Assembly (NCBI RefSeq): GCF_006345805.1
Contig: NC_043010.1
Span: 59,644,001 to 59,708,000, forward strand
Length of the DNA stretch: 64,000 bases
Source: Octopus sinensis
Taxonomy: Eukaryota
Reading direction: 5' to 3'
Shown one piece after another: positions 4,559 through 60,918 of the stretch (within the stretch, counting starts at the first letter, position 1; each line of letters begins with the position of its first letter). A program made the translations under genes and the position numbers. Below the pieces are notes generated by a model that ran no database searches, was not told where the DNA came from, and saw only the letters and a list, made by a program, of their open reading frames with translations.

Positions 4559-7500
4559 ATGTTGTTACACCTGTGTGTTTTGCTGACTTTCTTCCACTGT
4601 TATTTAAGTGAAGATATCACATTCCATGTTAAGGAAGAGAATATTCCTCATACGTATGTAGGGGACATTGCTACTGACTTACAGAAATCAGACAGCTCCT
4701 TCTTAAAGAATAAGGATTTAATTACATTTAGTCAACTGCAACAAAAGGGAGAACAGTTGTTCAATGTGACTAAAACAGGTAAACTGTACACTGTTGAGAC
4801 ATTGGATGCTGAGTCTGTGTGTAGTTATGAGAAAGAATGTTTTGAAATCGTTAAAGTTGCTGTTCACAAATCCAAGACATTTATGAAGATCTTAAAGATT
4901 AAAGTCATAATAGAAGACATCAATGACCACCAACCTGAGTTTCCTGAGAAAGAAATTACTCTACATTTCAGAGAAGGAGATGGTAAAGGTATGAAGAAAA
5001 CCATTCCTAATGCCATTGACAAAGATAAAGGTTATCAAAACAGCTTAATTAATTATGAATTAAAAAATGATAGGGAACATTACTCACTATTAGTCTCCAA
5101 AAGAGCAGATGGAATATCTACGTTGGGAATTATTTTAGAAAAGAAATTAGACAGAGAAACGAAAGACAGTTACGATATTGAAGTCATTGCTAAAGATGGG
5201 GGAACTCCACCAAAACAATCTGTTTTAAATGTGAAAATATCTGTAGAAGACGAAAATGATAATCCACCACAATTTTCCCAAAGTATCTACAATGTCTCTA
5301 TTGAACATAAACATAAAAAGAATATTCCAGTAGTCACATTATCTGCCAGTGATTTAGACATTGGCAGGAATGGTAAAATATCTTTCTATTTCAGTCCGAA
5401 GACTGATATGCAAATGAAACAGTATTTTAATATTGATGAAAACTCTGGGAAAATATTCTTAATAAAATCTTTAGAGGTTGACAGCAAAAATTCTTTAAAA
5501 TTATATATTGAAGCTAAAGATAATGGGATTCCTCCTCTCAGTTCCATAGCAACGGTTATGGTAAATGTCATCAACCAACACAACAATCCTCCAAATATTG
5601 ATGTGAACTTTATTTCTACACAGAATCACAACACAGCCACCATTCTGGAAGACATCAAAGTTGGTAGTTTCATTGCTTATGTGATGGTCACTGACAATGA
5701 TGTTGGACACAATGGAGAGGTGAACTGTCATATCAAAGACGACACATTCAAACTACAGTCAATGGGATCGAAGGAATATAAAATAGTTCTAAAGAAAGCA
5801 GTAGACAGAGAGACACAGGAACATTATCACTTTACTGTGTCGTGTGAAGATAAAGGATTACCTGCTCTGAAAACTGATAAAGATCTGTCAATCCAAGTGT
5901 TGGATGTGAATGATGTAGAACCACACTTTACGAAAGACACATTCAAGTTCCTTACCTATGAGAATGACAAAGCTAATTTCCCTATTGGCTTTATCAATGC
6001 TACAGACCCAGATATTGGTAAGGGAGGTGAATTGTCTTATTCTCTGAGAAATAAACAGCAATATCGTCTGCCATTCCAGATTATCAACTCTGGCTTTATT
6101 TCAACAAACCAGTCTTTAGACAGAGAACACAGAGATTTCTATGAGTTTGAGGTTTTTGTGAAAGACAATGGAAGCCCATCTCTGAATAACACAGTGAATG
6201 TTGAAGTGGAAGTATTGGATAGAAATGATAATGCTCCATATTTTACATTTCCTAGTGTTGACCATTTCACTCTTAATGTCCACTATCATCCGCAAAGTAA
6301 GAACGACATCACAGTTCTGAAAGCATCTGATATAGACAGTCACATGAATGCTTTTCTCAGGTACGAAATCGTTTCAGGTAATGAGAGACAGTTATTCAAA
6401 CTGGACTCTTTCACTGGTGTGTTATCTTACTCTCGCACAGTTTACCAAAATGATGCCGGATCATATGAGCTTGAGTTTGTTGTGAAAGACAGTGGTACTC
6501 CAGTTCTGTCAGCAACAACTAGTGTGTCTTTGACACTGACTGTTAGTAACAAGACGTCACCAATGTTCACAGCTGTGCACCTACCAAGTGATAACACAAT
6601 AGATGCGACATTGTTGATTATCATTGTAGTAGCAGCTGTGATAGTATCTATAGCTATTGTGGTTTCTATAACCCTGTGTATTGTGAGATGTAACAATGTG
6701 AGAAATAGCTCATCTGAAAGAACAGCAGAAGAGAAACAGGCATACCAATGTCGCAATGAGATGAGACAGTTGATCTATCAAGGTAACAACAGTGTACCTG
6801 TGATGTCAGGTAATCGAGGAGAATTGTCAGACAGATATGGTCATTCGAGGAGCCATTACTATCCTGAAGACTGGAAGACATCGACAATGAACCGGACACT
6901 TCAGAAGTCTACAAAGGTAAGTTTTATTTCAATAAACATTCTCTTAGTAAATAATGTGTGTTTAAGAATAATTTAGCTTCAGTGTTTTATCCAGTGTTTT
7001 GTATTTGAAATTACGGTTCACTTGACCAATTTTACATTATTGTTTTGCTTCATCATGTCCAAAATATATCTTATGTATGGTTAAGAAAATGTGATATGGT
7101 GTTGAATACTTATTTATTTATTTTTATTACTGTGATTACTGCTGTCCATTTCTTGTAAGATATTTTATGTCAAATTTACAGTCTGGCATTTTTAATGTTT
7201 GTATATAGGGTTGCACCTGATTTTGTGGAAACTTCCTAGCTACAATTCAGATATCTTAGTAAGCTGTGCTTCTGGAGATTAAGGTTCCAAATGCAACATT
7301 ACTGTACACACACTGACTGTCTAAACTTGCACTTTCCATTCAGAAAGAAGTCTCTAAGAGAGTCTGTCGAATCAATTATAAAAATATTGTTAATAATTGT
7401 CTGTGACTTTAGCTAAGTTGTACTGTATATAATTCTTGTAGGAAATGAGAATGGCAGTACTGAAAGATTAAAAAATCTTTACAGATTTAAAAAATTTGAC

Positions 7501-9500
7501 TGATTAAATATATATAAAATATTGTCTGTCCTCGGTAGTATAGTGGTAAGTATCCCCGCCTGTCACGCGGGAGACCGGGGTTCGATTCCCCGCCGGGGAG
7601 GCCATTACTTTTTGTAGTGAAGGCGCATGGCTCAGTGGTTAGAGCGTCGAGCTTACGATCGTGAGGTTGTGAGCTCGAATCCCGGACCGGGCTGCGTGTT
7701 GTGTTCTTGAGCAAAACACTTTATTTCACGTTGCTCCAGTTCACTCAGCTGTAGAAATGAGTTGCGACGTCACTGGTGTCAAGCTGTATCGACCTTTGTC
7801 TTTCCCTTGGATAACACTGGTGGCGTGGAGAGGGGAGGCTGGTATGCATGGGCGACTGCTGGTCTTCCATAAACAACCTTGCCCGGACTTGTGTCTAGGA
7901 GGGTAACTTTCTAGGTGCAATCCCATGGTCATTCATGACCGAAGGGGGTCTTTACCCTTTATTGTCAGTATTACCTGATCATAAATATAGAAAAAAAATT
8001 TTAATACCACCAAAAACCAGTAAATTTTGTGTCGGTGGCACATAAAAAACACCATCCGAGCGTGGCCGTCTGCCAGCCTCGTCTGGCACCTGTGTCGGTG
8101 GCACATAAAATCACCCACTACACTCTCGGAGTGGTTGGCGTTAGGAAGGGCATCCAGCTGTAGAAACACTGCCAGATCTGACTGGCCTGGTGCAGCCTTC
8201 GGGCTTGCCAGACCCCAGTTGAACCGTCCAACCCATGCTAGCATGGAAAGCGGACGTTAAACGGTGATGATGATTTTAGTGTCAATCATGAATGTTATGT
8301 TTATAGTATGTGTTGTTACTATTATATTTTACAGCAGAAATACAGTCAACCCATTGAGGTGACATCTTACGGAGACAACAGACCATCCTCTAACTATCCC
8401 ACTGACACATTGACCAGTCGTAAGAGCAGTGGACAGTGCTGGAGTGAGCGGTCAAGCCGACAGTATGAAGAAATACCAGCAATGTCAGGTAAAACAATTT
8501 CATTCATTCATGTTTTGTTATTAATTTCATTAACATAATTTAATTTTCACTCTGTCTAATTTCAGCAACTCAGAAATAATCTCTCAAGGCTTCTTTCAGT
8601 ATTTCTCTATTCATTACTGTTATGATAGCTGTTATTTTATTGTCAGTATAAAAGAAATTTATTTTTACTTAGAGAGGTAGACAGTCTATTTATCAAAGAC
8701 GAACGCATAGAATAAATCAGCAATAATTTCTTGTGGTGTTGAGCAAAGATCGAATAAAGGGGTCTATGTGTACTCGTTTGACCTATTAGAAATATCAGCC
8801 ACATCACCCTCAATCACACTCCACCGTCTTGAATATGGGAAGGATTTGTTAGATACCTTCTTTGATAGATTGTACATGAAAAAAAATAAAAGGATTAGAC
8901 AGTCATGACTGGAATGTGTTTGATCATGTCTGCACACTTGCGGTTGATCTGGAGCTAACTTACATATTACCAAATAATGTTTTTTATAGAAGAAATACTC
9001 CTTGTATATTTAAATAATTTTCAAATGATAACTGTCTAATTTCCTACTTAGAACATTATCACATACCCTACTATTGCTGTGTTAGAGATGCACCAAAGAA
9101 TCCATTGAAATACAATGTTTAGAATCTACACTTAAACTATATTGGATTCTGCTGAATTTTCGCAACATAAAATATCATTGACTGAACTGACTTAATCCAA
9201 CATATAACCATTGCATATTTTTGAATACGATTCTTAAAGATTTTAGGGATGGTTAATTATTGAAAGTTTATATGTTAGACCTGTGAAGTTAGCAGGCAAG
9301 GCATTGATTACTAATATCAGTAAATAACTACTGGCTATGTGAATTATGTAATAAGTATATTTGATATGTGTGTTTCAGGAATCTATGGTGGTGCCCCACC
9401 CGATGTATCAAGCACTAGTGAGAGAGACCATTACCAAGACAGATATGTGAAACCTCCAGAGAGACAGTTACCTTCAACACCAGATGTTGTTGTCAGTTAA
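4559..9500 (+). CDS. Pcdh: Protocadherin G1: join(4559..6916, 8335..8488, 9379..9500), ~877 aa
   Basis: Signal peptide, six cadherin repeats (DxNDxxP, LDRE, AxDxG motifs), EC1 Cys-X5-Cys and TM LLIIIVVAAVIVSIAIVVSITLCIV. Acceptor TTTCAG before 4515; donor AAG|GTAAGT at 6916 (phase 0). Exon 3 TACAG|CAG..TCAG|GT (phase 1). Exon 4 TTTCAG|GA..TAA. The frame is continuous across both junctions. Confidence 0.92.
7529..7600 (+). tRNA. tRNA-Asp-GTC: tRNA-Asp (anticodon GTC) in intron 2 of G1
   Basis: 72 nt. Acceptor stem TCCTCGG/CCGGGGA with discriminator G, anticodon stem CCCGC/GCGGG with loop CT-GTC-AC, T-loop GGTTCGATTCC. T5 Pol III terminator at 7609-7613. Confidence 0.95.
7619..7959 (+). mobile_element. 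tRNA-derived SINE directly behind the tRNA-Asp
   Basis: A-box-like TGGCTCAGTGG and B-box-like GCTCGAATCC, followed by the central segment GTGTTCTTGAGCAAAACACTTT..CCAGTTCACTCAGCTG that also occurs in the SINE at ~57982. Confidence 0.75.
8027..8274 (+). mobile_element. SINE-like repeat with (GAT)n tail
   Basis: Ends CCAACCCATGCTAGCATGGAAAGCGGACGTTAAA..GATGATGAT; the same family occurs inverted at five or more other sites in the window. Confidence 0.7.
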
Positions 9501-10035
9501 GTGAGACTGAGAAAGGAACACAACAGAAATAATATCACCTTCAACATTCACACAACATTTAAAAACATCAGAAATATTTTAGTTTGGTTATGATATTGCC
9601 CACATATGACTGAATATCTTCAAATATGTCACAATATATTATATATAACTCTCTCTCTCTCTCTTTCTCCCTCTCTCTCTTTATATATATATATATATAT
9701 ATATCTTGGGGATATTTCCTCAGATGAAGAAAATCGAAATCTTTAGACATAAATGATTTCAATAAAATTGTGATAAAGAAATTAGGTAAAATTTGTCAAG
9801 TCGTACATTTATGGAGTTTAAAGTTATACATTGCCCTTGGAAAATACAATATAATATTTAGAATGTTTACTAATTTATATGAATATTTAATTTTTTATAG
9901 AAATTACACAGAAAATATTAATATTTCAGAATATATATTTCACATGGCTAAGAAATAAACATTTCCAAGTATATGCTCATATAAAAGATTTAGTTTAGAA
10001 TTAGGTCAGACACACACACACTAACTGTTATTGTC

Positions 10036-10536
10036 AATATTGTATTTACATTTTAAATTACACACACATTAACAACATCAGCCATATTTTGTTAATATAA
10101 CCTCTCTGTTCTAAGGATTTCTATGTCAGTCTCTCTCCACATCAGACATGTTGGTGTTATATAGACTTATCATGGCTGACTGTTAGTGGAGCTGATGGGA
10201 TGTCTTCTCCCTCTCTGTATATGTATATTTCTCTCCTTTTTCTTTGTGGAGGGGAAACACAACATCTAGTCTGAGTGAGGCTAGAGTAAGCATCACCCAT
10301 CCTCCTCTCTCCTCTTCTCTCTCATACACAAATATACACACACTCTCACTAAACACCACACATCCACAAAGGAAGACTGAGAGGGAACTGCTGGTTCCCA
10401 CTGACTCACCACCAACACTATTCCATCAACATGAAGCCATTGTCACACCATAGCAGCAGTGACACAGACAACCATTAACAACAGAACATTGGGACCAAGT
10501 CACAGTTTATACAACAAAGGATTTTACACAATGAAG
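10036..10536 (+). promoter_or_regulatory. Conserved promoter/5'-leader module of G2, ending in donor ATGAAG|GTAAG
   Basis: Block A (~160 bp, 10036-10196) and block B (~175 bp, ending at 10536) recur almost unchanged before every gene, separated by a variable CT/CA-rich spacer. Strong 5' splice site and no in-frame ATG with the downstream CDS. The promoter role is inferred from position. Confidence 0.7.
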
Positions 10537-12167
10537 GTAAGTTTATTGTTGAATATTACGTTAAATAATAATTTTGCTTATCACAAGATGGTAATATCAA
10601 AATTCAAAATATAATATTCAAATGGTGGCCATATTAGATTTTTGTTAGTTCTCATTTAATAGCTTTCAAAGATTTTCTTCAGAGAAACAGTTAATTTAAA
10701 GAATACATTTTTAAACTTGTATACTCATAATTTCCACAAACATAAGTCCTTCATCATTACATTTGCGTATTATTTTATATTATTTATTAGTTATTGACAT
10801 TGTGCATTCCCATTCAGTGACTCAACGAGATATTGTTTAGTCTCTGTAATTATAAATTATTGTACATAATGATCATTTAACTGTATTTGATACTATAAAA
10901 GATTTCTCTATTGAATTAACAATGTTACCGAATAGCAAGAAGATTATTAATAATTCTCTCTCCTTCACATATAAGTGTCTGTCTGTGTTTCAACTTGACT
11001 GCGTGTCCTTATTCCTGTCTATGTGTGTAGTGAGGAAACCATTTTCTCATAAAAATGTATCTTGTTAAATTTGTTTGATAGAATATTGTTTTTTTGGAAG
11101 GTTACTTAATAAGTATGTTCCATTTGAAGGGGAAAATAAGTATTTTTGTTAACATATTTATTTCTATGATTTAAAACATTTGAACCTATTAATATTGATT
11201 GTTTAATTACTTTAAATTAATTATCCACTCACTGGTAATTTAATTTCTTCATAAGTTATGTTCAAGCCACTCAACTGTTACTCTAAGTCTGTCATATATT
11301 GTTGTAGCCATATAACAATTAGAAAATTAAATGTTCTTTATATGTATAACAGAGTTTTCATTTAAAAATAAGGAATATAATTACTTGGTATGTCTTATTT
11401 ATTAATTATCTCAGACAAGTTTATTTATAAAAATATCTTTGTAATCGTTTCATTTTGCCTACATGCCATATTAATGGCCAAAGGTAAATCTCTTAATAAC
11501 ATATTGCTATCAAAGATGTCCTGTGAACACTAACAGCTAATTTGTATGTTGTCTAGACATGCAGTTGAATCAAGTAATGAAGTATTTCTTTGTAACTAAC
11601 TTTTTCCATATATACATATGTATATAGGTATGTACATACACACACACACTCACACACACACAATGGTAGAGAGATTATCAGTATTTAATGTGGACTGTAA
11701 CGTTACCGTATTTTCCATTTTTACCTTTAACTCAAAATGCAAAAGCCATAACAGAATTTCTCTTACACATTATCATGTAATTCTTTTTCATTACTAAAAG
11801 GTTGTTATTTTCTCTATCTTTCCAATATGATGGAAAATGTTAAAATTTCTAAAAAGCGTTAGTTTTATTACATTTCAAGGGAAGTAACTCAAAATTTGTC
11901 CCTTTCCAATCATGAAATTGTAGAACTGTTTTTTTATTCTGCAACTGACAGAAATCATGTCTCCCTTTTTCTGTTTTGTTTTCTCTGTCTCTATCTATCT
12001 TCTTATGTTTCCCTCTTCATCATTCAGTTCATTCCTCCACCATCTTCTGAGATCATATTTCATTATATATACCCAAGAATTCTCAGTATAAGTAAGTTAT
12101 GTACAGAGATGGAGTCAGCAAGCTGGGAATTGGCCATAACTAAAACACTGTATGAAGCATGTAAATA

Positions 12168-13050
12168 GGGTCCATCAGGGTTTAGTTCTCAATACCCTCT
12201 TGTTTGTTACACTTCTGCAAGTCACAACAGAGGATCTTAAGACCACCTTGCCATGCCAACTATTGTCTGTGTGTCAACAACATCTTTCTTGTAGCTGAAT
12301 CTGTTAAATGTTTTGGGAAGAAATGTTTTGCATGGAAGCAAAGCCTCGAAACATGAGGTTTGAACCTAAAGCTAGCGAATGCAAAAGTTTTAGTTAGCAA
12401 AGTAGAAGATGGGTCTGTACATAGAGGTGGCCATGCATGATATGCATAAAATGAGTTTGTAGGAATTTGATAGAGTAAGCTATGTTTTTGCAAGAGGTGC
12501 AGTAGGATCAGATGTGAGATGGCAGAGATGAAAGAGTTTGTATGTCGTGGATGCCCAGCTAAAATTTTGAGTAGGAACACCTGTATATAAGGAATTGATT
12601 TTAATGCAAAAAATTGATCTCCAGAAGTTATTGATGACTTTTGTTGTGAAGGTACCCTAATTAACTGTAGAAGCAAGTGTTCCAAAAGCATAACTACCAG
12701 AGTAAGAATTTGAGTGAAAAATGTTTCAGAAGTTATTACTTCTGTTGACAACAATGGGATTCTCTTGCCAAGTGAGAGACAAGTTGTTTGATGCAGATGT
12801 ATAAAGTGTTGCATAGTAACGAAGCACAGGCGTTGAATGTAGAGGATGTGTTAAAGAAGTTTTATGTGTTTCTTTGCTGTGTGTGTAATGTTAGTCTACA
12901 TGAATGACTGCACAGAGAAGCTGAGAGTAAAACTGGATATAAGAGGGATCAGGCTTGTGACGAAACAACTACTGATTTTGCTATGTGTTATGCATTGTAT
13001 TGTATTGTCATCGTAGACATGGTGTGTGACTGATCATTTCAAGTTGGAGA
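12168..13050 (+). mobile_element. Decayed RTE-type LINE reverse transcriptase fragment; copies at ~32435-33315 and truncated at ~52643-52858
   Basis: Frameshifted translation resembling GVHQG..VL..LLF, EV.D.FC..G.LI, TRVRI..K.F.ELL.LLT and KLRVKLDIRGI, typical of the RTE RT and C-terminal region. Confidence 0.7.
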
Positions 13051-13599
13051 AACGACTGCTAACTGTGTGTATGTATATGTATGCATTAAGTTATATGTAA
13101 CTTAGTGTTCCCTGTTGATCCATTATAGTTGGGCATGTAGATGCACTTGGAACACCTAGTGCAGGGCTCCAAAAGACCATAATGCTGAAATATAAACTTG
13201 CGATTATCCTTATTTCTCTTACATTTGCTGTGTAGCTCATAGCTTGTTATTCCTCTCAGCATAGCAGTTACTTAACTATACAAAAAGCTGACTGGGTTCT
13301 GAAAATCTATGTGCAGCTCTAAACCTAACAGTAGCCGTCATGTATTTGTGTACACAATTTCTTATATATACACACATATATATGCATACACACACACACA
13401 CACATGCACACTCATGCACATAGACTTCTACCTTCCCTAGTTTCTTATACAATCCATATCTCCAGTTATGTGTGCTCTCGTCATTTCTGGCATCATTATT
13501 GAAAATATGGAAGACCTTTTTGAGTTATCTGACCACTAAATAGTCTTTCAACTATTATTCATCCATCTTATATGACCACTATTCCTAGGATTAGAGTCC

Positions 13600-14990
13600 T
13601 CAGGCACCATCTATATAGGATCCTATCAGAAGCAAGTTTCTTTAGACCTTCTGGTCGGATTTTCAAGTGCGAGCAACTGAGACTGGTTATTATCGAATCA
13701 TGGTCTGTCCTTGTCACCTGCTGACTGGTTCACATCGAAGGATTCATCATGCAATTCTTTCTTGTGACATTCTAATCATGTCTGTAGCACCTGAGCTGTG
13801 ATCTCTTAATGCACAGAAATAGTGGCCTGACTTAACGAGACTCCCTGATCTCTGAGCTTGGCACCTTATGGAGTAATGTTACTTCGGAGACCCTTTGTAG
13901 GAATCTCATTTCAACCATTTCTATTCATGATCCATACACTTTCACTAATTACCCAACATTTATGACCATAGGTTTGGCTTTTTCCCCAACCTATCCTCTT
14001 CTGAGGATCAAATGCTGGAGCAGACACATTTCAATTCTAGCTTCCACTTCAGCTTTCTTCCACACATGCCATTCAGAACTTGGCTGGGGTTCTTCTCTTG
14101 GGAGGTGGAGAGAACACATTACTGATCTTCTAAATCTGGTCATGTGGTGGAGATGTGGGACGTCTAGAAGTGAAGACTAACCTCACAGAGGCTGACGTCA
14201 TAGAGGCAATTAAAGCTCTCAAATGTGGCATGGCTGCAGTAGAGGATGAAATTCAATCTGAGATGTTAAAAGCCTTAAATAGAGAAGTTATTCTCTGACT
14301 GACTTTCGTATGCTAAGTGGTTTGGATCCCTGGGAAGACACCAGAGCACTGGCAGTCTGGAGTGATAATCGTAATGTTTAAAAAGCTCTACTTATAGAGG
14401 AATTTCTATGTTGAGCATCTCTAATCAAGTCTCAACTAAGTATGTGGAAAAGTTATAGGGACAGTGTCAAGCCTACGTCAGCTGAGGAATGATGTGGGTT
14501 GCATCTTGGATGTAGCAGAACTGACAGATATTCACCGAATGGTAGGTCTTTGAAAAATCGTATGAGGTGCTTGCTTGCTTTGCATATAACAACTGCATGT
14601 CACAGGACATGCTGTGGAAGGTTTTTCAGGAGTTTCATATTCACGTGCAACTTTTATTTGCCATGAAGTTCCTAAGTGATTGCTCAGATATTTGTGTTTG
14701 GCTAAATGGTTCTGAGTTGAAATCTTTCAGCGTGCATGTTGGACTTCATCCGAGATATTTATTGTATGCTTTTCATAATTTTTATGAATTGGATTGATAA
14801 GCAAAGCCATTATGCAAGTAATATCACAGTTGGTGGATGTAGGATTGGTCGGCTGATATTTGCAGATGACATGGTGCTACTTAGCTCCACAGAAGGTGAT
14901 TTGCATCATGTACTAAATGTCGAGTGTTGTAAAGCAGGGATAAGAATTAGTGTATTGAAGACTGAGCTGTTGGTCCACAAGTGTAGACGT
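13600..14990. mobile_element. Second decayed RTE LINE with internal inversion (minus arm ~13600-14065, plus arm ~14070-14990); copy at ~33870-35215, deleted remnant at ~53930-54340
   Basis: The plus arm gives RWREH..DLLN, EAIKALKCG.AA.EDEIQ.EMLKAL, YRGISMLS, LFIIFMNWID and LIFADDMVLL. The minus arm gives TYGHKCWV, VEMRFLQRVSEVTLLHKV.SSEIRES and IKRSQLRCY. Confidence 0.72.
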
Positions 14991-15169
14991 TTAAGTATCA
15001 ACTATTATTTCCACATATAATTACTGAATTAATATATCCTTATAAATTAATGATTTCTAATAAATAATTACGATATCCAAATTAATACATCTTCTCACTT
15101 TGTAAATATTTTTCTATTTCAGATCAACATTTTAATACCAATGATTTAATACCATCAGAAACAGAGACG

Positions 15170-18100
15170 ATGTTGTGTCTGTATATTTTACTGACTTTCT
15201 TCCACTGTTCCCTAAGTGAAGATATCACATTCCATGTTAAAGAAGAGAATAATCCCTACACCTATGTAGGGGACATTGCTACTGATTTACAGAAATCAGA
15301 CAGCTCCTTCTTAAAGAATAAGGATTTAATTACATTTAGTCAACTCCAACAAAAGGGGGAACAGTTGTTCAATGTGACGAGAACAGGTAAACTGTACACT
15401 GTTGAGACATTGGATGCTGAGTCTGTGTGTAGTTATGAGAAAGAATGTTTTGGAATCGTTAAAGTTGCTGTTCACAAATCCAAGACATTTATGAAGATCT
15501 TAAAGATTAAAGTCATAATAGAAGACATCAATGACCACCAACCTGAATTTCCTAAGAATGAAATCACACTAAACTTTGGGGAAGGCGATGGTAAAGGTAT
15601 GAAGAAACCCATTCCTAATGCCATTGACAAAGATAAAGGTTATCAAAACAGCTTAATTAATTATGAATTAAATGGTGGAGGTAACTATTTTTCATTAAGT
15701 GTTTCCAAAGAAGCTGATGGTTTATCAACATTAGAAATAATTCTGGAAGATAAATTAGACAGAGAAAAGAAAGACAGTTACAATATTGAGGTCATTGCTA
15801 AAGATGGAGGAAACCCACCAAAACAATCTGTTTTAAATGTTAAAATATCTGTGGAAGATCAAAATGATAACAGACCACAGTTTTCTCAAAGTATCTACAA
15901 TGTTTCTATTGAACATAAACATAAAAAGAATATTCCAGTAGTCACATTATCTGCCAGTGATTTAGACATTGGCAGGAATGGTAAAATATCTTTCTATTTC
16001 AGTCAGAAAACTGATGAAAAAATAACAGAATACTTTCATTTAGATGAAAGTACTGGAAAGTTATTTCTTGAAAAGCCTATAAATTTTGGTAAGAAAGAAT
16101 CATTTAAATTATATGTGAAAGCCAAAGATAATGGAATTCCTCCTCTCAGTTCCATTGCAATAATTCAGATAAATGTTATCAACCAACACAACAATCCTCC
16201 AAATATTGATGTGAACTTTATTTCTACACAGAATCACAACACAGCCACCATTCTGGAAGACATCAAAGTTGGTAGTTTCATTGCTTATGTGATGGTCACT
16301 GACAATGATGTTGGACACAATGGAGAGGTGAACTGTCATATCAAAGACGACACATTCAAACTACAGTCAATGGGATCGAAGGAATATAAAATAGTTCTAA
16401 AGAAAGCAGTAGACAGAGAGACACAGGAACATTATCACTTTACTGTGTCGTGTGAAGATAAAGGATTACCTGCTCTGAAAACTGATAAAGATCTGTCAAT
16501 CCAAGTGTTGGATGTGAATGATGTAGAACCACACTTTACGAAAGACACATTCAAGTTCCTTACCTATGAGAATGACAAAGCTAATTTCCCTATTGGCTTT
16601 ATCAATGCTACAGACCCAGATATTGGTAAGGGAGGTGAATTGTCTTATTCTCTGAGAAATAAACAGCAATATCGTCTGCCATTCCAGATTATCAACTCTG
16701 GCTTTATTTCAACAAACCAGTCTTTAGACAGAGAACACAGAGATTTCTATGAGTTTGAGGTTTTTGTGAAAGACAATGGAAGCCCATCTCTGAATAACAC
16801 AGTGAATGTTGAAGTGGAAGTATTGGATAGAAATGATAATGCTCCATATTTTACATTTCCTAGTGTTGACCCTTTCACTCTTAATGTCCACTATCATCCG
16901 CAAAGTAAGAACGACATCACAGTTCTGAAAGCATCTGATATAGACAGTCACATGAATGCTTTTCTCAGGTATGAAATCGTTTCAGGTAACGAGAGACAGT
17001 TATTTAAACTGGATTCGTTCACTGGTGTGTTATCTTACTCTCGCACAGTTTACCAAAATGATGCCGGATCATATGAGCTTGAGTTTGTTGTGAAAGACAG
17101 TGGTACTCCAGTTCTGTCAGCAACAACTAGTGTGTCTTTGACACTGACTGTTAGTAACAAGACGTCACCAATGTTCACAGCTGTGCACCTACCAAGTGAT
17201 AACACAATAGATGCGACATTGTTGATTATCATTGTAGTAGCAGCTGTGATAGTATCTATAGCTATTGTGGTTTCTATAACCCTGTGTATTGTGAGATGTA
17301 ACAATGTGAGAAATAGCTCATCTGAAAGAACAGCAGAAGAGAAACAGGCATACCAATGTCGCAATGAGATGAGACAGTTGATCTATCAAGGTAACAACAG
17401 TGTACCTGTGATGTCAGGTAATCGAGGAGAGATGACAGACAGATATGGTCATTCAAGGAGCCATTACTATCCTGAAGACTGGAAGACATCGACAATGAGC
17501 AGATCTCTTCAGAAGTCTACAAAGGTAAGCTTTACTTCTATTGACTGTTTCTTAGTAGTTAGTGTTTAATTAAGAATTATATGACTGGAAGATATTAGTA
17601 GTGAGCAGATGTCTTCAAAAAGCCATAAATAAGGTATGTGTTAAGATTCTCTATTGATAATCTAATATTTTATTGAATAATGGTATTAAATGTTTGATAT
17701 AAATGTAACTTGTAAATGTTTAACTTTCTTCATATTGATTTTATGCCAATAACATATAATGATGATTGATATCAATATTTTATAAAGCATAGATTTTGTA
17801 AAATTTTCAAGATAATATGTTATATTAAAATTGCAATAAGACATAAAATAATTTGTTTTTTTAACAGCAGAAATACAGTCAACCGATTGAGGTGACATCT
17901 TATGGAGACAACAGACCATCTTCTCACTATCCCACTGACACATTGACCAGTCGTAAGAGCAGTGGACAGTGCTGGAGTGAGCGGTCAAGTAGACAGTATG
18001 AAGAAATACCAGCAATGTCAGGTAAAACACACTTGTCCATTCATATCATTATAATAATTCAATTCCCAGATGTGTAAGTTTTGTAACTCAGGGACATTGT

Positions 18101-19990: not shown

Positions 19991-20447
19991 GTGAGACTGA
20001 GAAAGGAACACAACAGAAATAATATCACCTTCAACATTCACACAATATATATAAAAAAAACAAAACCAGAAATATATTAGTTAATAAATAATATTGCCTA
20101 TATATGATAAATAGCTTCTTAAATCTGTTTGAGACAATATGTTTTATTTAAATCCTCAGATTGTTTCTACAGATGCAAATACAAGTTACCATTGTTAGAT
20201 CTGCCCTATCAAATTCTTCAGTACTTATAGACTGGTAGATACTTGTCCTGCAGAAATACAATTTATATTTGAAACAGAAAATTGAATTATCTTAGAAAAT
20301 CAAAATAAATATTTAAATTATATTGTAAATATTAAGACTTAAGAAAGTATATTTTACTTAGTTTACATATTTATTTTATAATTTTACAAATATATCTGAA
20401 ATGGAATACATAAGAATTAGGTCACCCACACATTCCCAGTTGTTGTC

Positions 20448-20925: not shown

Positions 20926-21271
20926 GTAAGTTTGTTATTCCATATTATTTATTCAAATTATGTGAAGAACCAATATTGTAACATCAAAAGTCTAATATTT
21001 TATAATAGATATGTGTCAGTTCTCATTTATTGCATTTCTTTCCAACATGGCTTTTATATATTTAGTAGGAAACAGGAAGGGAGTGGAAAATATCTTCATT
21101 TCTAATTTTACATAACATTATTAAAATTAATTATTGTTATCTTTGACGTATATATAATATTTTTCTATTTTATTTTAACATTCACTCCACCAAACATTGT
21201 ATAGTCTTAGACAATACCAAATATTAAACAAGATTATCAATTAAATATATACAGAAATGTAGGTTTTATAC

Positions 21272-21482
<211 letters not shown>

Positions 21483-41621: not shown

Positions 41622-41686
<65 letters not shown>

Positions 41687-49930: not shown

Positions 49931-50106
49931 GTGAGACTGAGAAAGGAACACAACAGAAATAATATCACCTTCAACATTCACACAACATTTAAAAGCAACA
50001 GAAATATTTTAGTTTGGTTATGATATTGCCCACATATGACTGAATATCATCATATTTGTCACAATGTATTATATATGACACTCTCCCCCCCCACCTCTCT
50101 CTGTAT

Positions 50107-50146
<40 letters not shown>

Positions 50147-50483
50147 CTTGGGGATATTTCCTCAGATGAAGAGAATCAAAACCTTTAGACATAAATGATT
50201 TCAATCAAATTGTGATAAAGAAATTAGGTAAAAATTAGTCAAGTCATATATTTTAGGTACTTAAAATTATACATTCCATTTGGAAAATACAATATAATAT
50301 TTAAAATGTTTACTAATTTATGATATGAATATTTAATTTTTTATATAAATTATGCAGAAAATGTTAATATATGAGAAAATATATTTCACATGGCTAAGAA
50401 ATAAACATTTCGTTGTTTATGCTCATATAAAAGATTTAGTTTAGAATTAGGTCAGACACACACACACACTAACTGTTATTGTC

Positions 50484-50996
50484 AATATTGTATTTACATT
50501 TTAAATTACACACACATTAACAACATCAGCCATATTTTGTTAATATAACCTCTCTGTTCTAAGGATTTCTATGTCAGTCTCTCTCCACATCAGACATGTT
50601 GGTGTTATATAGACTTATCATGGCTGACTGTTAGTGGAGCTGATGGGATGTCTTCTCTCTCTGTATATGTATATTTCTCTCCTTTTTCTTTGTGGAGAGG
50701 AAACACAACATCTAGTCTGAGTGAGGCTGGAGTAAGCATCACCCATCCTCCTCTCTCCCTTTCTCTCTCATACACAAATATTCAACCACACTCACACACA
50801 CATACATTAAACATCACACATCCACAAAGGAAGACTGAGAGGGAACTGCTGGTTCCCACTGACTCACCACCAACACTATTCCATCAACATGAAGCCATTG
50901 TCACACCATAGCAGCAGTGACACAGACAACCATTAACAACAGAACATTGGGACCAAGTCACAGTTTATACAACAAAGGATTTTACACACAATGAAG
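50484..50996 (+). promoter_or_regulatory. Conserved promoter/leader module of G6
   Basis: Same blocks A and B; donor after 50996. Confidence 0.7.
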
Positions 50997-52904
50997 GTAA
51001 GTTTATTGTTCAATATTATTTATCCATTTATGTGAAATAATAATTTTGCTTCTCACAAGAATATAATATCAAAATTCAAAATATAATATTCTAATGGTGG
51101 CCATATTAAATCTGTGTTAGTTCTCATTTAATGGCTTTCAAAGATTTTCTTCAGAGAAATAGTTAATTTAAAAATACATTTTTAAACTTGTATACTCATA
51201 ATTTTCACAAACATAAGTCCTTCATCATTACATTTGCATATTATTATATATTATTCATTAGTTATTGACATTGTGCATTCCCATTCAGTGACTCAACGAG
51301 ATATTGTTTAGTCTCTGTAATTATAAATTATTATACATAATGATCATTTAACTGCATTTAATACTATAAAAGATTTCTCTATTGAATTAACAATGTTACC
51401 AAATAACAAGAAAATTATTAATAATTCTCTCTCCTTCACATATAAGTGTCTGTCTGTGTTTCAACTTGACTGTGTGTCCTTATTCCTGTCTATGTTTGTA
51501 GTAAGGAGACCATTTTCTCATAAAAATGTATCTTGTTAAATTCATTTGATAGAATGTTGTTTTTTGGAAGATTACTTAATAAGTATGTTCCATTTGAAGG
51601 GGAAAATAAGTATTTTTGTTAACATTTATTTCTATGATTTAAAACATTTGAACCTATTAATATTGATTGTTTATTGCAGCAGTTATAATTCCTTTAAATT
51701 AATTATCCACTCACTGGTAATTTAATTTCTTCATAAGGTATATTCATGTCACTCAACTGTTACTCTAAGTCTGTCATATATTGTTGTAACCATATAACAA
51801 TTAGAAAATTAAATGTTTTTATATGTATAACAGAGTTTTCATTTAAAAATAAGGAATATAATTACTTGGTATGTCTTATTTATTAATTATCTCACACAAG
51901 TTTATTTATAAAAATATCTTTGTAATCGTTTCATTTTGCCTACATGCCATATTAATGGCCAGAGGTAAATCTCTTAATAACATATTGCTATCAAAGATGT
52001 CCTGTGAACACTAACAGCTAATTTGTATGTTGTCTAGACATGCAGTTGAATCAAGTAATGAAGTATTTCTTTGTAATTAACTTTTTCCATATATACATAT
52101 GTATATAGGTATGTACATACACACACGCACACACAATGGTAGAGAGATTATCAGTATCTAATGTGGACTGTAACGTTACCGTATTTTCCATTTTTACCTT
52201 TAACCCAAAATGCAAAAGCCATAACAGAATTTCTCTTATACATTATCATGTAATTCTTTTTCTATACTAAAAGATTGATATTTTCTCTATCTTTCCAACA
52301 TGATGGAAAACGTTAAAATTTTGACAAAGTGGTAGTTTTATTACATTTCAAGGGAAGTAACTCAAAATTTGTCCCTTTCCAATCATGAAATTGTAGAAAC
52401 GTCTTTTTATTCTACAACTGACAGAAATCATGTCTCCCTTTTTCTGTTTTGTTTTCTCTGTCATTATCTATCTTCTGATGTTTCTCTCTTCATCATTCAG
52501 TTCATTCCTCCACCATCTTCTGAGGCCATATTTCATTATATATACCCAAGAACTCTCAGTATAAGTAAGTTATGTACAGAGATGGAGTCAGCAAGGTGGG
52601 AATTGGCCATAACTAGAACACTGTATGAAGCATACAAGTAAAGTCCCTCAGGGCTTAGTTCTCAATACCCTTCTGTTTGTTACACTTCTGCAAGTCACTA
52701 CAGAGGATCTTAAGACCACCTTCCCATGCCAACTATTGTCTGTATGTCAACAACATCTTTCTTGTAGCTGAATCTGTTAAATGTTTAGGGAAGAAATTTT
52801 TTGCATGGAAGCTAAGCCTCGAATCATGAGGTTTGAACCTAAAGCTAGCGAATGCAAACTATGGAATGTGAATTACACCATAAAGTCCACACTTATGTGT
52901 TTAT

Positions 52905-54482: not shown

Positions 54483-57400
54483 ATGTTGTTACACCTGTGT
54501 GTTTTACTGACTTTCTTCCACTGTTTTTCAAGTGAAGATATCACATACCATGTTAAAGAAGAGAATAATCCCTATACATATGTAGGGGACATTGCTACTG
54601 ACTTACAGAAATCAGACAGCTCCTTCTTAAAGAATAAGGATTTAATTACATTTAGTCAACTGCAACAAAAGGGAGAACAATTGTTCAATGTGACGAGAAC
54701 AGGTAAACTGTACACTGTTGAGACATTGGATGCTGAGTCTGTGTGTAGTTATGAGAAAGAATGTTTTGAAATCGTTAAAGTTGCTGTTCACAAATCCAAG
54801 ACATTTATGAAGATCTTAAAGATTAAAGTCATAATAGAAGACATCAATGACCACCAACCTGAGTTTCCTCAGAAAGAAATCACACTGATCTTTGGTGAAG
54901 GTGATGGTAGAGGTATGAAGAAACCCATACCTAATGCTATAGACAAAGATAAAGGTTATCAGAACAGCTTAATCAATTATGAATTAAATGGTGGAGGTAA
55001 CTATTTTTCATTAAGTGTTTCCAGAGAAGCTGATGGCTTATCAACATTAGGAATCATTTTAGAAGAAAAATTAAACAGAGAAAAGAAGGACAATTATGAT
55101 ATTGAGGTCATTGCTAAAGATGGAGGAACTCCACCAAAACAATCTGTTTTAAATGTTAAAATATCTGTGGAAGATCAAAATGATAATCCACCACAATTTT
55201 CTCAGAGTATCTACAATGTCTCTATTGAACATAAACATAAAAAGAATATTCCAGTCGTCACATTATCTGCCAGTGATTTAGATATTGGCAGGAATGGTAA
55301 AATATCATATTATTTTAGTCGAAAAACTGATGATAAACTGAAAGAATACTTCCATCTAGATGAAAATTCTGGGAAATTATTCTTAGAAAAACCTTTAAAT
55401 CTGGATATAAAAGAGTCATTTAAATTGTATGTAAAAGCTAAAGATAATGGTATGCCTCCTCTCAGCTCCATAGCAACGGTTATAGTAAATATCATCAACC
55501 AACACAATAATCCTCCAAATATTGATGTGAACTTTATTTCTACACAGAATCACAACACAGCTACCATTCTGGAAGACATCAAAGTTGGTAGTTTCATTGC
55601 TTATGTGATGGTCACTGACAACGATGTTGGACACAATGGAGAGGTGAACTGTCATATCAAAGACGACACATTCAAACTACAGTCAATGGGATCGAAGGAA
55701 TATAAAATAGTTCTAAAGAAAGCAGTAGACAGAGAGACACAGGAACATTATCACTTTACTGTGTCGTGTGAAGATAAAGGATTACCTGCTCTGAAAACTG
55801 ATAAAGATCTGTCAATCCAAGTGTTGGATGTGAATGATGTAGAACCACACTTTACGAAAGACACATTCAAGTTCCTTACCTATGAGAATGACAAAGCTAA
55901 TTTCCCTATTGGCTTTATCAATGCTACAGACCCAGATATTGGTAAGGGAGGTGAATTGTCTTATTCTCTGAGAAATAAACAGCAATATCGTCTGCCATTC
56001 CAGATTATCAACTCTGGCTTTATTTCAACAAACCAGTCTTTAGACAGAGAACACAGAGATTTCTATGAGTTTGAGGTTTTTGTGAAAGACAATGGAAGCC
56101 CATCTCTGAATAACACAGTGAATGTTGAAGTGGAAGTATTGGATAGAAATGATAATGCTCCATATTTTACATTTCCTAGTGTTGACCCTTTCACTCTTAA
56201 TGTCCACTATCATCCGCAAAGTAAGAACGACATCACAGTTCTGAAAGCATCTGATATAGACAGTCACATGAATGCTTTTCTCAGGTATGAAATTGTTTCA
56301 GGTAACGAGAGACAGTTATTTAAACTGGATTCGTTCACTGGTGTGTTATCTTACTCTCGCACAGTTTACCAAAATGATGCCGGATCATATGAGCTTGAGT
56401 TTGTTGTGAAAGACAGTGGTACTCCAGTTCTGTCGGCAACAACTAGTGTGTCTTTGACACTGACTGTTAGTAACAAGACGTCACCAATGTTCACAGCTGT
56501 GCACCTACCAAGTGATAACACAATAGATGCGACATTGTTGATTATCATTGTAGTAGCAGCTGTGATAGTATCTATAGCTATTGTGGTTTCTATAACCCTG
56601 TGTATTGTGAGATGTAACAATGTGAGAAATAGCTCATCTGAAAGAACAGCAGAAGAGAAACAGGCATACCAATGTCGCAATGAGATGAGGCAATTGATCT
56701 ATCAAGGTAACAACAGTGTACCTGTGATGTCAGGTAATCGAGGAGAGATGTCAGACAGATATGGTCATTCGAGGAGCCATTACTATCCTGAAGACTGGAA
56801 GACATCGACAATGAGCAGAAGTCTTCAAAAGTCCACAAAGGTAAGCTTTATTTCAATGAATAAACTATTAAATTATGTTCAACTGAGAATGTTTTAGCTG
56901 AATATTTTATATTTTACAATTACTTGTAAGTTATTTGATGGCAAATGATAATCTGAGAAGATTCTACCAGGAACATCTAACATGAAGTCTTGCAATGCCA
57001 TCAGGCATTTCTACCATTTGTCAGATTCCAGACAAAATTGTGGAAACCCTTTCTTAGCAAGAATTCTGATTGTTCTGTGAGCTGTACTCTTTAAGACAAA
57101 CTGCCAAATTCTTTATTTCTTTTCTACCCATCATTGCAGTCTAAAAATATGCATGTTTGTGTGTGTGTGTACAAACACACGGAGTCCCAACTTGCATTAT
57201 CCTTCCACAAAAGTCTCTAAAATGCCATGAATACTTTCCTTGTTTAGAGTCCGCTGTAAGAGCATTATTAGCAATTGTTTCTGACTTTAGCTCTGTTGTA
57301 CTGTATAAATCTAGTAGGATACAAGGGAAAGATCATCAGGCAAAAGTGTTGTTTTTATTGCTGTGTCAGTGGAAGAATTGCAGTCCTCATGATCCTCTAT

Positions 57401-60400: not shown

Positions 60401-60918
60401 ACACACAGTTAATTTCTTATTTAATTGAGATTCTGTTTTTTTTTTTTTTTTGCATTTTTCTTAATAAGGGTTTGGACTGTTATTTAAAAATGTTCTGTTT
60501 AACATTGGTATTAGAGAAATAAGTAACAGGAAAATACTACATTGTTTTGTTTTTTCTTCATCAAAATGTTATTACTTTCAGTCCTGGAAAACATTTCTAT
60601 TTTGTTCCAAGTAAAATATTTTAGCATTTTGATCCCTTTTGAAGTGTAACATGAACATGTATTCTGACAAGCAGACTAACATTATACAATATTATTAAAA
60701 ATCTGAATGTATGCATTGTATTCATGCAATAATCTGATGGATCTCTTTACTGTCTATATGAACTATGTAGTAAGTTTATTTGAATATGTGTTTCAGGAAT
60801 CTATGGTGGTGCCCCACCCGATGTATCAAGCACCAGTGAGAGAGACCATTACCAAGACAGATATGTGAAACCTCCAGAGAGACAGTTACCTTCAACACCA
60901 GATGTTGTTGCCAGTTAA
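54483..60918 (+). CDS. Pcdh: Protocadherin G6: join(54483..56840, 58478..58631, 60797..60918), ~877 aa
   Basis: Same architecture. Large exon starts at 54439; leader donor at 50996. Introns 2 and 3 are largely unrelated to those of G1-G5. Confidence 0.92.
57755..57960 (-). mobile_element. SINE, minus orientation
   Basis: Contains GGTACTTAATTTATTGACCC..GGATGAAAGGCAAAGTTGAC..GGAATTTGAACTCAG; the reverse complement gives a B-box-like GAGTTCAAATTCC. Confidence 0.6.
57982..58300 (+). mobile_element. tRNA-derived SINE
   Basis: A-box-like TGGCTTAGTG and B-box-like GAGTTCAATTCC, then GTGTCCTTGAGCAAAATACTTT..CCAGTCCACTCAGCTG as in the 7619 SINE. Confidence 0.65.
59705..60200 (-). mobile_element. (GAT)n-tailed SINE-like repeat with internal GGCAC(A/G)GGTGCCA short repeats
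   Basis: Same family tail plus 3-4 imperfect ~30-bp internal repeats; a second tail remnant lies at ~60148. Confidence 0.6.

Follow-up and report, generated by a model that had tools for sequence, protein, structure and literature searches.

A tandem protocadherin array in Octopus sinensis whose genes evolve in concert outside a diverse EC2/EC3 tract

How do neighbouring genes come to be nearly identical along most of one large exon and widely different in a single part of it? This question is raised by the window analysed here, a 64,000-nucleotide stretch of Octopus sinensis DNA in which six intact protocadherin genes (G1-G6) lie in tandem, all on the + strand and with three coding exons each. 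The initial annotation had read the locus as a protocadherin array, and the Pfam search agrees, since each gene carries one Cadherin_2 and five Cadherin repeats (PF08266 Cadherin_2, E = 1.8e-8; PF00028 Cadherin, five stretches, E = 8e-72). The open reading frames, of 799-818 aa and spaced 9.2-10.6 kb apart, hold the ectodomain and the membrane span on one large exon; the small exons were located by tblastn, and GT/AG junctions and intact spliced products were checked for G1-G6. Every gene has both small 3' exons of its own, so that the window holds 12 copies, all flanked by proper splice sites. The genes are:

4559..9500, + strand, G1 gene, coding part; exons 4559-6916 (signal peptide, EC1-EC6, membrane span and proximal tail), 8335-8488 and 9379-9500 (stop); product 877 aa
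15170..19990, + strand, G2 gene; exons 15170-17524, 17868-18021 and 19869-19990; product 876 aa
25127..29716, + strand, G3 gene; exons 25127-27484, 28298-28451 and 29595-29716; product 877 aa
35393..40213, + strand, G4 gene; exons 35393-37747, 38092-38245 and 40092-40213; product 876 aa
45325..49930, + strand, G5 gene; exons 45325-47682, 48496-48649 and 49809-49930; product 877 aa
54483..60918, + strand, G6 gene; exons 54483-56840, 58478-58631 and 60797-60918, position 60918 being the stop codon of the third coding exon; product 877 aa

Calcium-binding linker motifs (DxNDxxPxF, DRE and DxD) were sought between the repeats; in a 99-sequence alignment D104 N106 D107 P110 F112 and D215 N217 D218 P221 F223 are invariant, and so are the linker residues N326 P329 and D433 N435 D436 P439. 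The membrane span, read by eye, is the hydrophobic stretch ATLLIIIVVAAVIVSIAIVVSITLCIV that follows EC6 within the 2.36-kb exon. From SEDIT to STKVS the six genes align over 772 codons free of indels, as had been claimed for the ectodomain, and the sole indel among them affects a single residue of the signal peptide. No further protocadherin fragments were found in the window; an ORF at 12260-12814 (-) gave no Pfam match and is probably spurious. When a promoter element was sought in the last 240 nt before 16 ATGs, a splice acceptor was the only conserved element; it precedes each ATG by 50-75 nt, which indicates that the promoter is not immediately at the large exon.

The amino-acid differences among G1-G6 are strongly clustered, with 82 of the 97 variable sites falling in one 640-bp tract that makes up 213 of the 772 codons (Fisher p = 1e-36). 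Numbered from the S of SEDIT, the tract comprises codons 112-324, that is, EC2 and EC3 up to the EC3/EC4 linker, and the variable windows first quoted for the six genes lie within 3 nt of it. The earlier hand counts for G1 versus G3 proved exact on recount (EC1 2/112, EC2 25/108, distal EC3 31/66, with 0/39 in proximal EC3), no amino acid differs between the EC3/EC4 linker and the end of the membrane span, and over all six genes EC4-EC6 contains exactly three variable amino-acid sites, again as first stated. The large exon is accordingly divided into the following tracts:

4943..5581, + strand, G1 non-homogenised EC2-EC3 tract, mean pS 0.37-0.45 vs 0.03 in EC4-6
15551..16189, + strand, G2 non-homogenised EC2-EC3 tract
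25511..26149, + strand, G3 non-homogenised EC2-EC3 tract
35774..36412, + strand, G4 non-homogenised EC2-EC3 tract, with a patch at codons ~123-127 common to the adjoining G5
45709..46347, + strand, G5 non-homogenised EC2-EC3 tract
54867..55505, + strand, G6 non-homogenised EC2-EC3 tract; distal EC3 is G2/G4-like on its 5' side and G1-like on its 3' side
5582..6916, + strand, G1 homogenised tract, which runs from EC4 through EC6 and the membrane span into the proximal cytoplasmic part and stops with the exon
16190..17524, + strand, G2 homogenised EC4-to-exon-end tract
26150..27484, + strand, G3 homogenised EC4-to-exon-end tract
36413..37747, + strand, G4 homogenised EC4-to-exon-end tract
46348..47682, + strand, G5 homogenised EC4-to-exon-end tract
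55506..56840, + strand, G6 homogenised EC4-to-exon-end tract

Silent sites follow the same boundaries. Between G1 and G3, 44 of 127 synonymous sites differ in the tract vs 16 of 354 outside it (p = 3e-16). Silent divergence was calculated by domain with the Nei-Gojobori method, and the possibility raised at the outset, that it might be as high in EC4-6 as in EC2-3, is clearly not so: among G1-G6 it reaches 0.5-0.7 in the tract vs 0.03 in EC4-EC6 (0.014-0.053 for the tract from EC4 to the exon end); intermediate values of 0.08-0.10 apply to EC1, the membrane/cytoplasmic part and both small 3' exons. Mean values for the six genes are:

EC1, pS 0.084, pN 0.013
EC2, pS 0.369, pN 0.115
proximal EC3, pS 0.200, pN 0
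distal EC3, pS 0.445, pN 0.153
EC4-6, pS 0.032, pN 0.0015
membrane span and cytoplasmic part, pS 0.079, pN 0.0085

The term hypervariable, applied initially to EC2/EC3, is misleading in so far as it implies fast evolution: dN/dS is 0.15-0.43 in the tract and below 1 in every domain, and the tract is old diversity under purifying selection. Between gene types, introns and upstream DNA either fail to align or reach 64-84% identity, and most of the intergenic DNA does not align, whereas exon 2 is 95.5-99.4% and exon 3 96.7-100% identical, the identity dropping off within 10-15 nt at every splice junction. These comparisons show that EC2 and most of EC3 are as old as the introns and the intergenic DNA. 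For identity that follows exons so closely, RNA-templated (cDNA) conversion is not favoured, because all six genes retain both introns, and conversion limited to short homology islands, together with selection, is the simpler account. GC-biased conversion was also considered; GC3 is 0.20-0.26 in the tract vs 0.35-0.37 elsewhere, but the contrast is lost at four-fold sites (0.33 vs 0.28, p = 0.44), and the GC excess was dropped as a sign of it.

Could the constant parts merely be young? Their identity would be explained if the genes had multiplied recently by tandem duplication (birth and death) and positive selection had then driven EC2/EC3 apart quickly, and the window does hold a two-gene duplication of ~22 kb with ~2.5% divergence:

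10000..32652, + strand, duplication copy A (3' flank of G1, G2, G3), left edge fuzzy
30239..52858, + strand, duplication copy B (3' flank of G3, G4, G5)

The two copies are 96.3-97.7% identical by megablast, against a background mismatch of ~2.5%, and diverge most in the EC2 windows. In addition, whole-gene distances date an octopod protocadherin burst to 8-14 Ma (PMC9795677). However, within a single exon the silent divergence of EC2/EC3 is 10-20 times that of EC4-6, dN/dS is below 1, different gene types cannot be aligned in their introns or upstream DNA, and EC2/EC3 lineages are common to Argonauta, as described below. A burst of this kind is thus already contradicted and we hold it to be highly improbable; the duplication shows that occasional unequal crossing-over adds to concerted evolution.

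The comparison between genera was made at the DNA level with 13 Octopus genes and only three Argonauta (A. hians) genes. In this set EC4-6 has 43 genus-fixed differences and a single shared polymorphism, whereas EC2 has 0 fixed and 82 shared and distal EC3 0 fixed and 61 shared; exon 2 and exon 3 show 3/1 and 6/0 fixed/shared differences. Neighbour-joining trees agree, the Argonauta genes being monophyletic with 100% bootstrap for EC1, EC4-6 and the membrane/cytoplasmic part and with 0% for EC2 and distal EC3. Two distal-EC3 clades span the genera, one uniting G1, Ovul2 of O. vulgaris and Ahia1 of Argonauta (81% bootstrap), the other G3, G5 and Argonauta Ahia2 (91%). Trees conflict between neighbouring segments of the same gene, and PHI gives p = 0.0005 over the exon. 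These results show that the EC2/EC3 lineages are older than the Octopus-Argonauta split and, together with the 43 fixed differences in EC4-6, they identify the mechanism as concerted evolution by gene conversion with EC2/EC3 left diverse, which bears out what had been proposed for the locus.

Without conversion, extreme purifying selection acting on silent sites as well, for example through RNA editing or RNA structure, would have to have frozen EC4-EC6, the membrane span and the tail. EC4-6 dS is 0.03-0.04 within a genus and only 0.21 between genera, compared with 0.70 for EC1 and above 1 for EC2/EC3, where Nei-Gojobori/JC distances are saturated; the low EC4-6 value suggests, plausibly, that silent sites there are under some additional constraint. 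Constraint cannot, however, yield 43 states that are common to the paralogs of one genus and differ from those of the other, nor can it give 100% genus monophyly in EC4-6 beside cross-genus clades in EC3. As the sole cause, silent-site purifying selection is contradicted, and we judge it very unlikely, but it may contribute.

The same pattern appears in O. sinensis, O. vulgaris and Argonauta hians genomes that were assembled independently, as well as among annotated O. bimaculoides proteins, and the constant region of the window genes is indistinguishable from that of either O. vulgaris or O. sinensis. That near-identical repeats were collapsed or cross-polished during assembly, creating a false identity of EC4-EC6, is scarcely credible in view of this recurrence with a separate constant version in each genus; 1.3-kb identical stretches every ~10 kb are a known difficulty for assemblers, but the window contains no N, and EC4-6 has distinct silent variants, with 37 polymorphic nucleotides from codon 330 on. 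At the protein level, at least 22 Argonauta paralogs have one constant version of EC4-6, which differs from the single Octopus version. The homogenised array claimed initially is part of a unit far larger than the window, which takes in at least 22 proteins in Argonauta and at least 6 in O. sinensis, and EC1 too is variable in this wider group. A second Argonauta group of 10 proteins has mean identities of 0.85 in EC1, 0.68 in EC2-3 and 0.99 in EC4-6, and in both genera as well as in this second group the edges of the variable tract lie on the EC1/EC2 and EC3/EC4 linkers.

Conversion also operates inside the tract. PHI is significant in EC2 (p = 0.002) and in distal EC3 (p = 0.001), and the nearest paralog changes every 16-24 codons along EC2. 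Between the recent duplicates G2 and G4, 24 of the 32 EC2 differences have both states in other paralogs, as do 20 of 28 between G3 and G5, which marks them as imported variants; only 8 EC2 differences are private to recent duplicates (2.5%), which is the background divergence of the duplication. These data show that short conversion patches reach the variable tract and reshuffle existing variants, chiefly in EC2. The earlier proposal that conversion spares EC2/EC3 thus holds in so far as diversity is kept, but simple sparing does not, since short patches are exchanged (PHI p <= 0.002). Paralogs are less diverged at silent sites (0.5-0.8) than genes of one type compared across the two genera (0.8-1.4). 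In distal EC3, genes of the same type across genera give Nd 17.5 and Sd 28.5, and different types within one genome Nd 40.5-44.3 and Sd 19.5-20.7 (Fisher p = 0.006 and 0.004 for the type vs ortholog contrast). This persistence of amino-acid types across genera, despite partly homogenised silent sites, points to selection keeping isoforms different in distal EC3. The contrast is not significant in EC2, and for the G3 type it is marginal only (p 0.05-0.08).

An AlphaFold model with a pLDDT of 85 has protocadherin EC1-4 structures as its best PDB matches (TM 0.70-0.75), and the best 46 Foldseek matches are all protocadherins (TM 0.59-0.75), the closest solved relatives being delta-2 and clustered protocadherins alike. 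On this model, no enrichment of variable positions in loops was found (40/100 loop vs 37/101 strand residues), nor any of polar or charged residues, the hydrophobic/polar mix being that of invariant sites. Mapping onto the vertebrate trans interface covered the elements named in published text: positions 125, 253 and 206, the EC2 beta4-beta5 loop and the EC3 Phe-X10-Phe loop. Positions 125 and 253 are specificity positions in vertebrates (PMC5106212, PMC5001838). The octopus residue aligned with position 253, in the EC3 Phe-X10-Phe loop, is P, Q or R among G1-G6, and the one aligned with position 125 is constant; the placement of variable residues on this interface, as judged by alignment, is at most suggestive.

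Some of these observations would also fit a passive process, in which conversion acts on any sequence that is still similar enough, while EC2/EC3 diverged early under relaxed constraint and the mismatches then blocked heteroduplex formation; neither selection for diversity nor a recognition code would be involved. The spread of variable sites over strands and loops with an ordinary hydrophobic/polar mix, a dN/dS of 0.15-0.43 and the non-significant EC2 contrast would be expected from it, and introns, which are not selected, likewise escape homogenisation. Yet conversion does enter the tract while the amino-acid types of distal EC3 persist, the silent divergence of paralogs lies below that of same-type genes across genera, the tract edges fall on the same two linkers in both genera and in the second group, and the same domain pair is spared in vertebrates (PMC4978886). 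We therefore regard passive sparing as rather unlikely. The preferred reading, which we hold with good confidence, is a six-gene array that is a mosaic of ages, with concerted evolution outside EC2/EC3 and, inside, patch conversion together with retention of EC3 types.

Repeated gene conversion among paralogs keeps EC1 alike and, beyond EC3, also EC4-EC6, the membrane span and the cytoplasmic part, together with both 3' exons. By homology, a mechanism can be proposed in which: (i) the proteins would pair in trans as antiparallel EC1-EC4 dimers, with EC2/EC3 setting which isoform binds which; (ii) the constant EC4-EC6, membrane span and tail may serve a common cis assembly and signalling; and (iii) the 3' exons of each gene, kept alike by conversion, may act as the shared constant exons do in vertebrate clusters. 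It is conceivable, and we propose it tentatively by analogy, that the full vertebrate logic evolved independently here, with conversion that homogenises the scaffold outside EC2/EC3 and shuffles short patches into new combinations inside it, and EC3 types selected for a homophilic specificity used in neuronal self/non-self or partner recognition.

The pattern marks EC2/EC3, and above all distal EC3, as likely to be the specificity-bearing part of cephalopod protocadherins; 20 type-specific positions were identified, and concrete isoform pairs are available for domain swaps. The array also shows that separate small exons, evolving in concert across unalignable introns, can keep a region constant where no exons are shared. 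Since whole-gene distances are dominated by homogenised segments and the EC2/EC3 lineages predate the Octopus-Argonauta split, the dating of a burst to 8-14 Ma (PMC9795677) is at risk. Many paralogs hardly differ over the final ~1.6 kb of their coding sequence and the initial ~55 nt of the 3'UTR, so that short-read or 3'-biased single-cell data (e.g. PMC9712504) may not separate the genes. Telling paralogs apart requires reads over EC2/EC3.

The clustered protocadherins of vertebrates are known to show this pattern, domain-selective gene conversion having reportedly been described there by Noonan et al. in 2004, and the octopus array is an independent origin of the same conversion pattern and an evolutionary replicate of it. 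Like the octopus genes, the alpha, beta and gamma clusters are made of tandem same-strand units in which one large exon encodes six EC repeats together with the membrane span; dS peaks in EC2/EC3 and reaches its minimum in the membrane-proximal repeats, and the cytoplasmic end is constant. Mouse alpha isoforms have mean identities of 96/69/59/85/98/84% from EC1 to EC6 (PMC4978886), the same profile as in the six octopus genes and the likeness that the initial annotation had suggested, and the cephalopod and vertebrate expansions are independent (PMC9068888, PMC4978886). They differ in that the vertebrate clusters share constant exons, whereas each octopus gene owns two concertedly evolving 3' exons and has a splice acceptor before its large exon; cephalopod protocadherins are full-gene duplicates without shared exons (PMC9068888). 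The delta-2 protocadherins (Pcdh8, 10, 17, 18, 19), also with six EC repeats, are the closest solved relatives by sequence and fold (6vg1, E = 4.6e-90, TM 0.73; also 6vfr, 6vft and 6vfw) and are reported to form antiparallel EC1-4 trans dimers (PMC7082078, PMC5115871). Unlike the octopus genes, they are single genes with no array, isoform series or concerted evolution.

The expansion of protocadherins in cephalopods was reportedly noted by Albertin and colleagues in 2015. Published accounts (PMC9068888, PMC6339937, PMC9795677) concern the same gene family and arrays, and two of them propose 'gene conversion' or 'homogenization' in one sentence each (PMC6339937, PMC9068888); no per-domain dS, EC2/EC3-vs-EC4-6 contrast or cross-genus test was found in the three. 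We found no domain-level report for cephalopods, a remark in Albertin et al. 2015 or Wang & Ragsdale 2017 being possible. Insect Dscam1 and the shortened Dscam arrays of chelicerates likewise set variable recognition domains on a constant scaffold, a design that is reported to yield many homophilic specificities (PMC6339937; bioRxiv 10.1101/2019.12.15.877159). Dscam belongs, however, to the immunoglobulin superfamily and varies by alternative splicing or promoters in one gene, whereas the octopus has separate genes homogenised by conversion. In the recognition exons of the MHC, short-tract patchwork conversion reshuffles standing variants while other exons stay alike, and lineages cross species; that diversity is allelic and maintained by pathogens, in another protein family and another biology, whereas in the octopus it lies between paralogs.

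The window holds six + strand open reading frames (ORFs) of about 800 codons, G1 to G6, spaced 9.2-10.6 kb apart, and no further protocadherin fragments were found in it. All six encode a protocadherin-type first cadherin repeat (EC1; PF08266) followed by five more repeats (EC2-EC6), a hydrophobic membrane-spanning segment and a short run of basic residues, and in all of them the large exon ends in ...ACAAAG with GTAAG directly after the junction. The spliced products are intact, at 876-877 amino acids, and involve the following elements:

Own copy in each gene, + strand: second coding exon, 154 nt, with a CAGCAG tandem acceptor
Own copy in each gene, + strand: third coding exon, 122 nt, ending in the stop codon
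For example 4490-4505 (G1) and 15100-15115 (G2), + strand: upstream splice acceptor, also found in the compared loci of O. sinensis (L001), Argonauta hians (L002) and O. vulgaris (L003)

The tandem CAG-CAG acceptors of exon 2 (8332-8340, 17865-17873, 28295-28303, 38089-38097, 48493-48501 and 58475-58483) account for the annotated X1/X2 isoform pairs, which are one glutamine apart (...STKQKYSQ vs ...STKKYSQ). The upstream element, a polypyrimidine-CAG splice acceptor (TTTCTnTTTCAG), is strictly conserved ~50-75 nt 5' of the ATG in all 16 genes compared from the two genera; the large exon must thus be preceded by one or more 5' leader exons, which, like the promoters, should be located further upstream. 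The top database matches are 'protocadherin beta-15-like' proteins of O. sinensis (96%) and also of O. vulgaris and O. bimaculoides, and more than 20 Argonauta hians proteins are among the matches, at 76-89%.

The six genes align from SEDIT to STKVS over 772 codons with zero indels. The initial annotation had described a constant scaffold carrying a variable EC2/EC3, and this observation is real. Its amino-acid counts for G1 against G3 were exact (EC1 2/112, EC2 25/108, proximal EC3 0/39, distal EC3 31/66, then zero differences on through the membrane span), as was its statement that EC4-EC6 has exactly three variable amino-acid sites across the six genes; the end position it gave, 60918, falls on the G6 stop codon. 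Codons 112-324, numbered from the S of SEDIT and covering EC2 and EC3 up to the EC3/EC4 linker, contain 82 of the 97 variable amino-acid sites (p = 1e-36), and synonymous differences are equally concentrated there (p = 3e-16).

Silent divergence was compared by domain as the mean of Nei-Gojobori counts (pS) for the six window genes. Mean pS reaches 0.37 in EC2 and 0.45 in distal EC3, and is 0.20 in proximal EC3 with zero amino-acid changes, while the homogenised part gives 0.084 in EC1, 0.079 in the TM/cytoplasmic region and 0.032 in EC4-EC6. Within the variable tract dN/dS is 0.15-0.43, and its divergence is therefore old and under purifying selection; the term 'hypervariable' is misleading for EC2/EC3 in so far as it implies fast evolution by positive selection. 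Between different gene types, upstream DNA and introns are unalignable or 64-84% identical across fractions of their length, and identity among genes reaches 95.5-100% in exons 2 and 3. The non-coding backbone thus sides with the variable tract, against the constant parts. Identity across the six genes is lost within 10-15 nt at all four splice junctions and continues for ~55 nt into the 3'UTR.

These genes were then set against three from O. sinensis, four intact ones from O. vulgaris and three from Argonauta hians (family Argonautidae); none of the four fetched comparison loci contains the window. The constant region of the window is indistinguishable from the O. sinensis and O. vulgaris versions. 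In EC4-EC6, dS is 0.033 among the window genes and 0.041 among those of Argonauta, and rises to 0.21 (range 0.19-0.235) across genera; the corresponding EC2 values are 0.52, 1.68 and about 1.1. Between 13 Octopus and 3 Argonauta genes, EC2 has 0 fixed nucleotide differences and 82 shared polymorphisms, and distal EC3 0 and 61; small exons 2 and 3, with 3 and 6 fixed and 1 and 0 shared, behave as EC4-EC6. In neighbour-joining (NJ) trees of single domains (300 bootstraps), Argonauta monophyly has 0% support in EC2 and distal EC3 and 100% in EC1 and the TM/cytoplasmic region, and distal EC3 forms clades that cross genera: G1 with Ovul2 (O. vulgaris) and Ahia1 (Argonauta), 81%, and G3 and G5 with Ahia2 (Argonauta), 91%. 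One constant EC4-to-tail protein version is common to at least 22 Argonauta paralogs; all Octopus members carry another, even genes with strongly different EC1.

Recent duplication as the sole cause of the uniform parts is excluded by this genus-specific constant version, by the cross-genus EC3 clades and by the fixed and shared counts. Pure constraint as the sole cause is excluded by the same constant version and counts together with the domain-wise trees, and assembly error as the sole cause by the comparison with a second genus. Concerted evolution of the array, as initially proposed, is confirmed by the genus-fixed sites of EC4-EC6 (43, against 1 shared) and by the 100% monophyly of Argonauta there; the evolutionary part of that interpretation, as refined here, is well supported. 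The silent rate in the homogenised core is unexpectedly low: against the Argonauta locus, silent divergence is only 0.21 in EC4-EC6 (e.g. 5582-6590), 0.70 in EC1 and >1 in same-type EC2/EC3.

Part of the array has been duplicated, with G2 and G3 in one copy and G4 and G5 in the other:

~10000-32652 against 30239-52858: two-gene tandem duplication, 96.3-97.7% identical, background mismatch ~2.5%

When the copies are compared in 250-nt windows, divergence peaks in the EC2 segments (9.6% and 8.4%), where dS is 0.30. At protein level, G2 and G4 are separated by 12 residues in EC2 and 2 in distal EC3, and G3 and G5 by 11 and 4. There are 32 EC2 differences for G2/G4 and 28 for G3/G5, and in 24/32 and 20/28 of them both states are found in other paralogs. 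Each pair has 8 private differences, that is 2.5%, which equals the duplication background, and therefore the excess came from other paralogs after duplication. PHI is significant within EC2 (p = 0.002) and within distal EC3 (p = 0.001); along EC2 the closest paralog switches every 16-24 codons, and distal EC3 is mostly a single block. The proposal that conversion spares EC2/EC3 thus stands insofar as the tract stays diverse, but conversion does enter it, as seen from PHI and the imported EC2 variants.

Outside the coding tract, an intergenic 2 kb (11900-13950 vs 32167-34217) is 99.8% identical between copies whose surroundings are ~2.5% different, which suggests a very recent conversion event; the 184-codon ORF that it contains (12260-12814, - strand) gave no Pfam hit. 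(TA)n microsatellites occupy the same site in both copies (21267-21483 and 41490-41698), with ~50+31 vs ~100 repeats. The second intron and 3' flank of G1 are 91-96% identical to G3/G5 (7000-11000 vs 27500-31500 and 47700-51700), a likeness that does not extend to its upstream DNA, first intron or EC2/EC3. G1 thus appears chimeric, through either an old unequal crossover or conversion over a long stretch.

The amino-acid versions, or types, of distal EC3 were compared across genomes. The same type in two genera gives dN 0.11-0.15 and dS 0.8-1.4, and different types in one genome dN 0.23-0.31 and dS 0.6-0.8. Replacement/silent counts are 40.5/19.5 and 44.3/20.7 between types against 17.5/28.5 within type (p = 0.006 and 0.004). 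The contrast is marginal for the G3 type (p = 0.05-0.08) and not significant in EC2. Twenty positions, numbered from the S of SEDIT, are type-specific: 132, 137, 151, 163, 166, 169, 206, 269, 275, 276, 283, 284, 296, 297, 304, 309, 314, 316, 317 and 319. From these contrasts, silent sites in distal EC3 are partly homogenised per genome, yet the amino-acid types persist. With small numbers and saturated distances, this is supporting evidence, not proof, that selection may keep the types apart. The types match the vertebrate protocadherin pattern, in which specificity determinants are conserved among orthologs and diversified among paralogs (PMC5001838, PMC5106212).

Among solved structures, Xenopus Pcdh8.1, the delta-2 protocadherins and the clustered gamma/alpha/beta protocadherins are the closest relatives. 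In an AlphaFold model of EC1-4 (pLDDT 85), variable sites overall show no enrichment in loops or polar residues. [quoted passage not shown] The residue aligned to vertebrate position 253 varies in the octopus genes (P/Q/R), and that aligned to 125 is constant (PMC5106212).

Directly 5' of G1 lies a further ORF:

1599-3494, + strand: intact hAT-type transposase-like ORF, 631 codons, first Met at codon 25

It contains Spin-doc/C2H2 zinc finger, DUF4371 and hAT C-terminal dimerisation domains; none of the four related loci compared contains a match to it. A conserved block is found ~0.3-0.5 kb 3' of each stop codon (e.g. 9980-10660, 20315-21029 and 61198-61977). It is 80-85% identical across the Octopus units, rising to >92% against the G3 and G5 units, and 70-75% identical in Argonauta; the flanking DNA is less conserved, and the block may belong to a distal part of the 3'UTR or have a regulatory role. 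In O. vulgaris, the closest paralog to G3/G5 (L003 12647-15141) has a frameshift at the EC3/EC4 junction that leaves two overlapping reading frames, and its annotated product omits the frameshifted part; this gene is a pseudogene unless the frameshift is an assembly error.

In a second Argonauta group, made up of 10 proteins, mean identity is 0.85 in EC1, 0.68 in EC2-3 and 0.99 in EC4-6, against 0.54-0.58, 0.52-0.55 and 0.62-0.67 for pairs outside such groups. For cephalopod protocadherins there are general remarks on gene conversion (PMC6339937, PMC9068888), and whole-gene distances have been interpreted as a recent burst in octopods (PMC9795677); a literature search, outside Albertin 2015 and Wang & Ragsdale 2017, found no domain-resolved analysis. 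According to single-cell data, a cell expresses ~19-21 protocadherins, of which some are specific to a cell type (PMC9712504). That the array serves as a neuronal identity code would be a reasonable reading. Gene conversion that spares EC2/EC3 is established in vertebrates (PMC4978886, citing Noonan 2004), and the octopus array is a convergent variant of this known kind of system, although the vertebrate clustered protocadherins have shared constant exons and the octopus array is without them.
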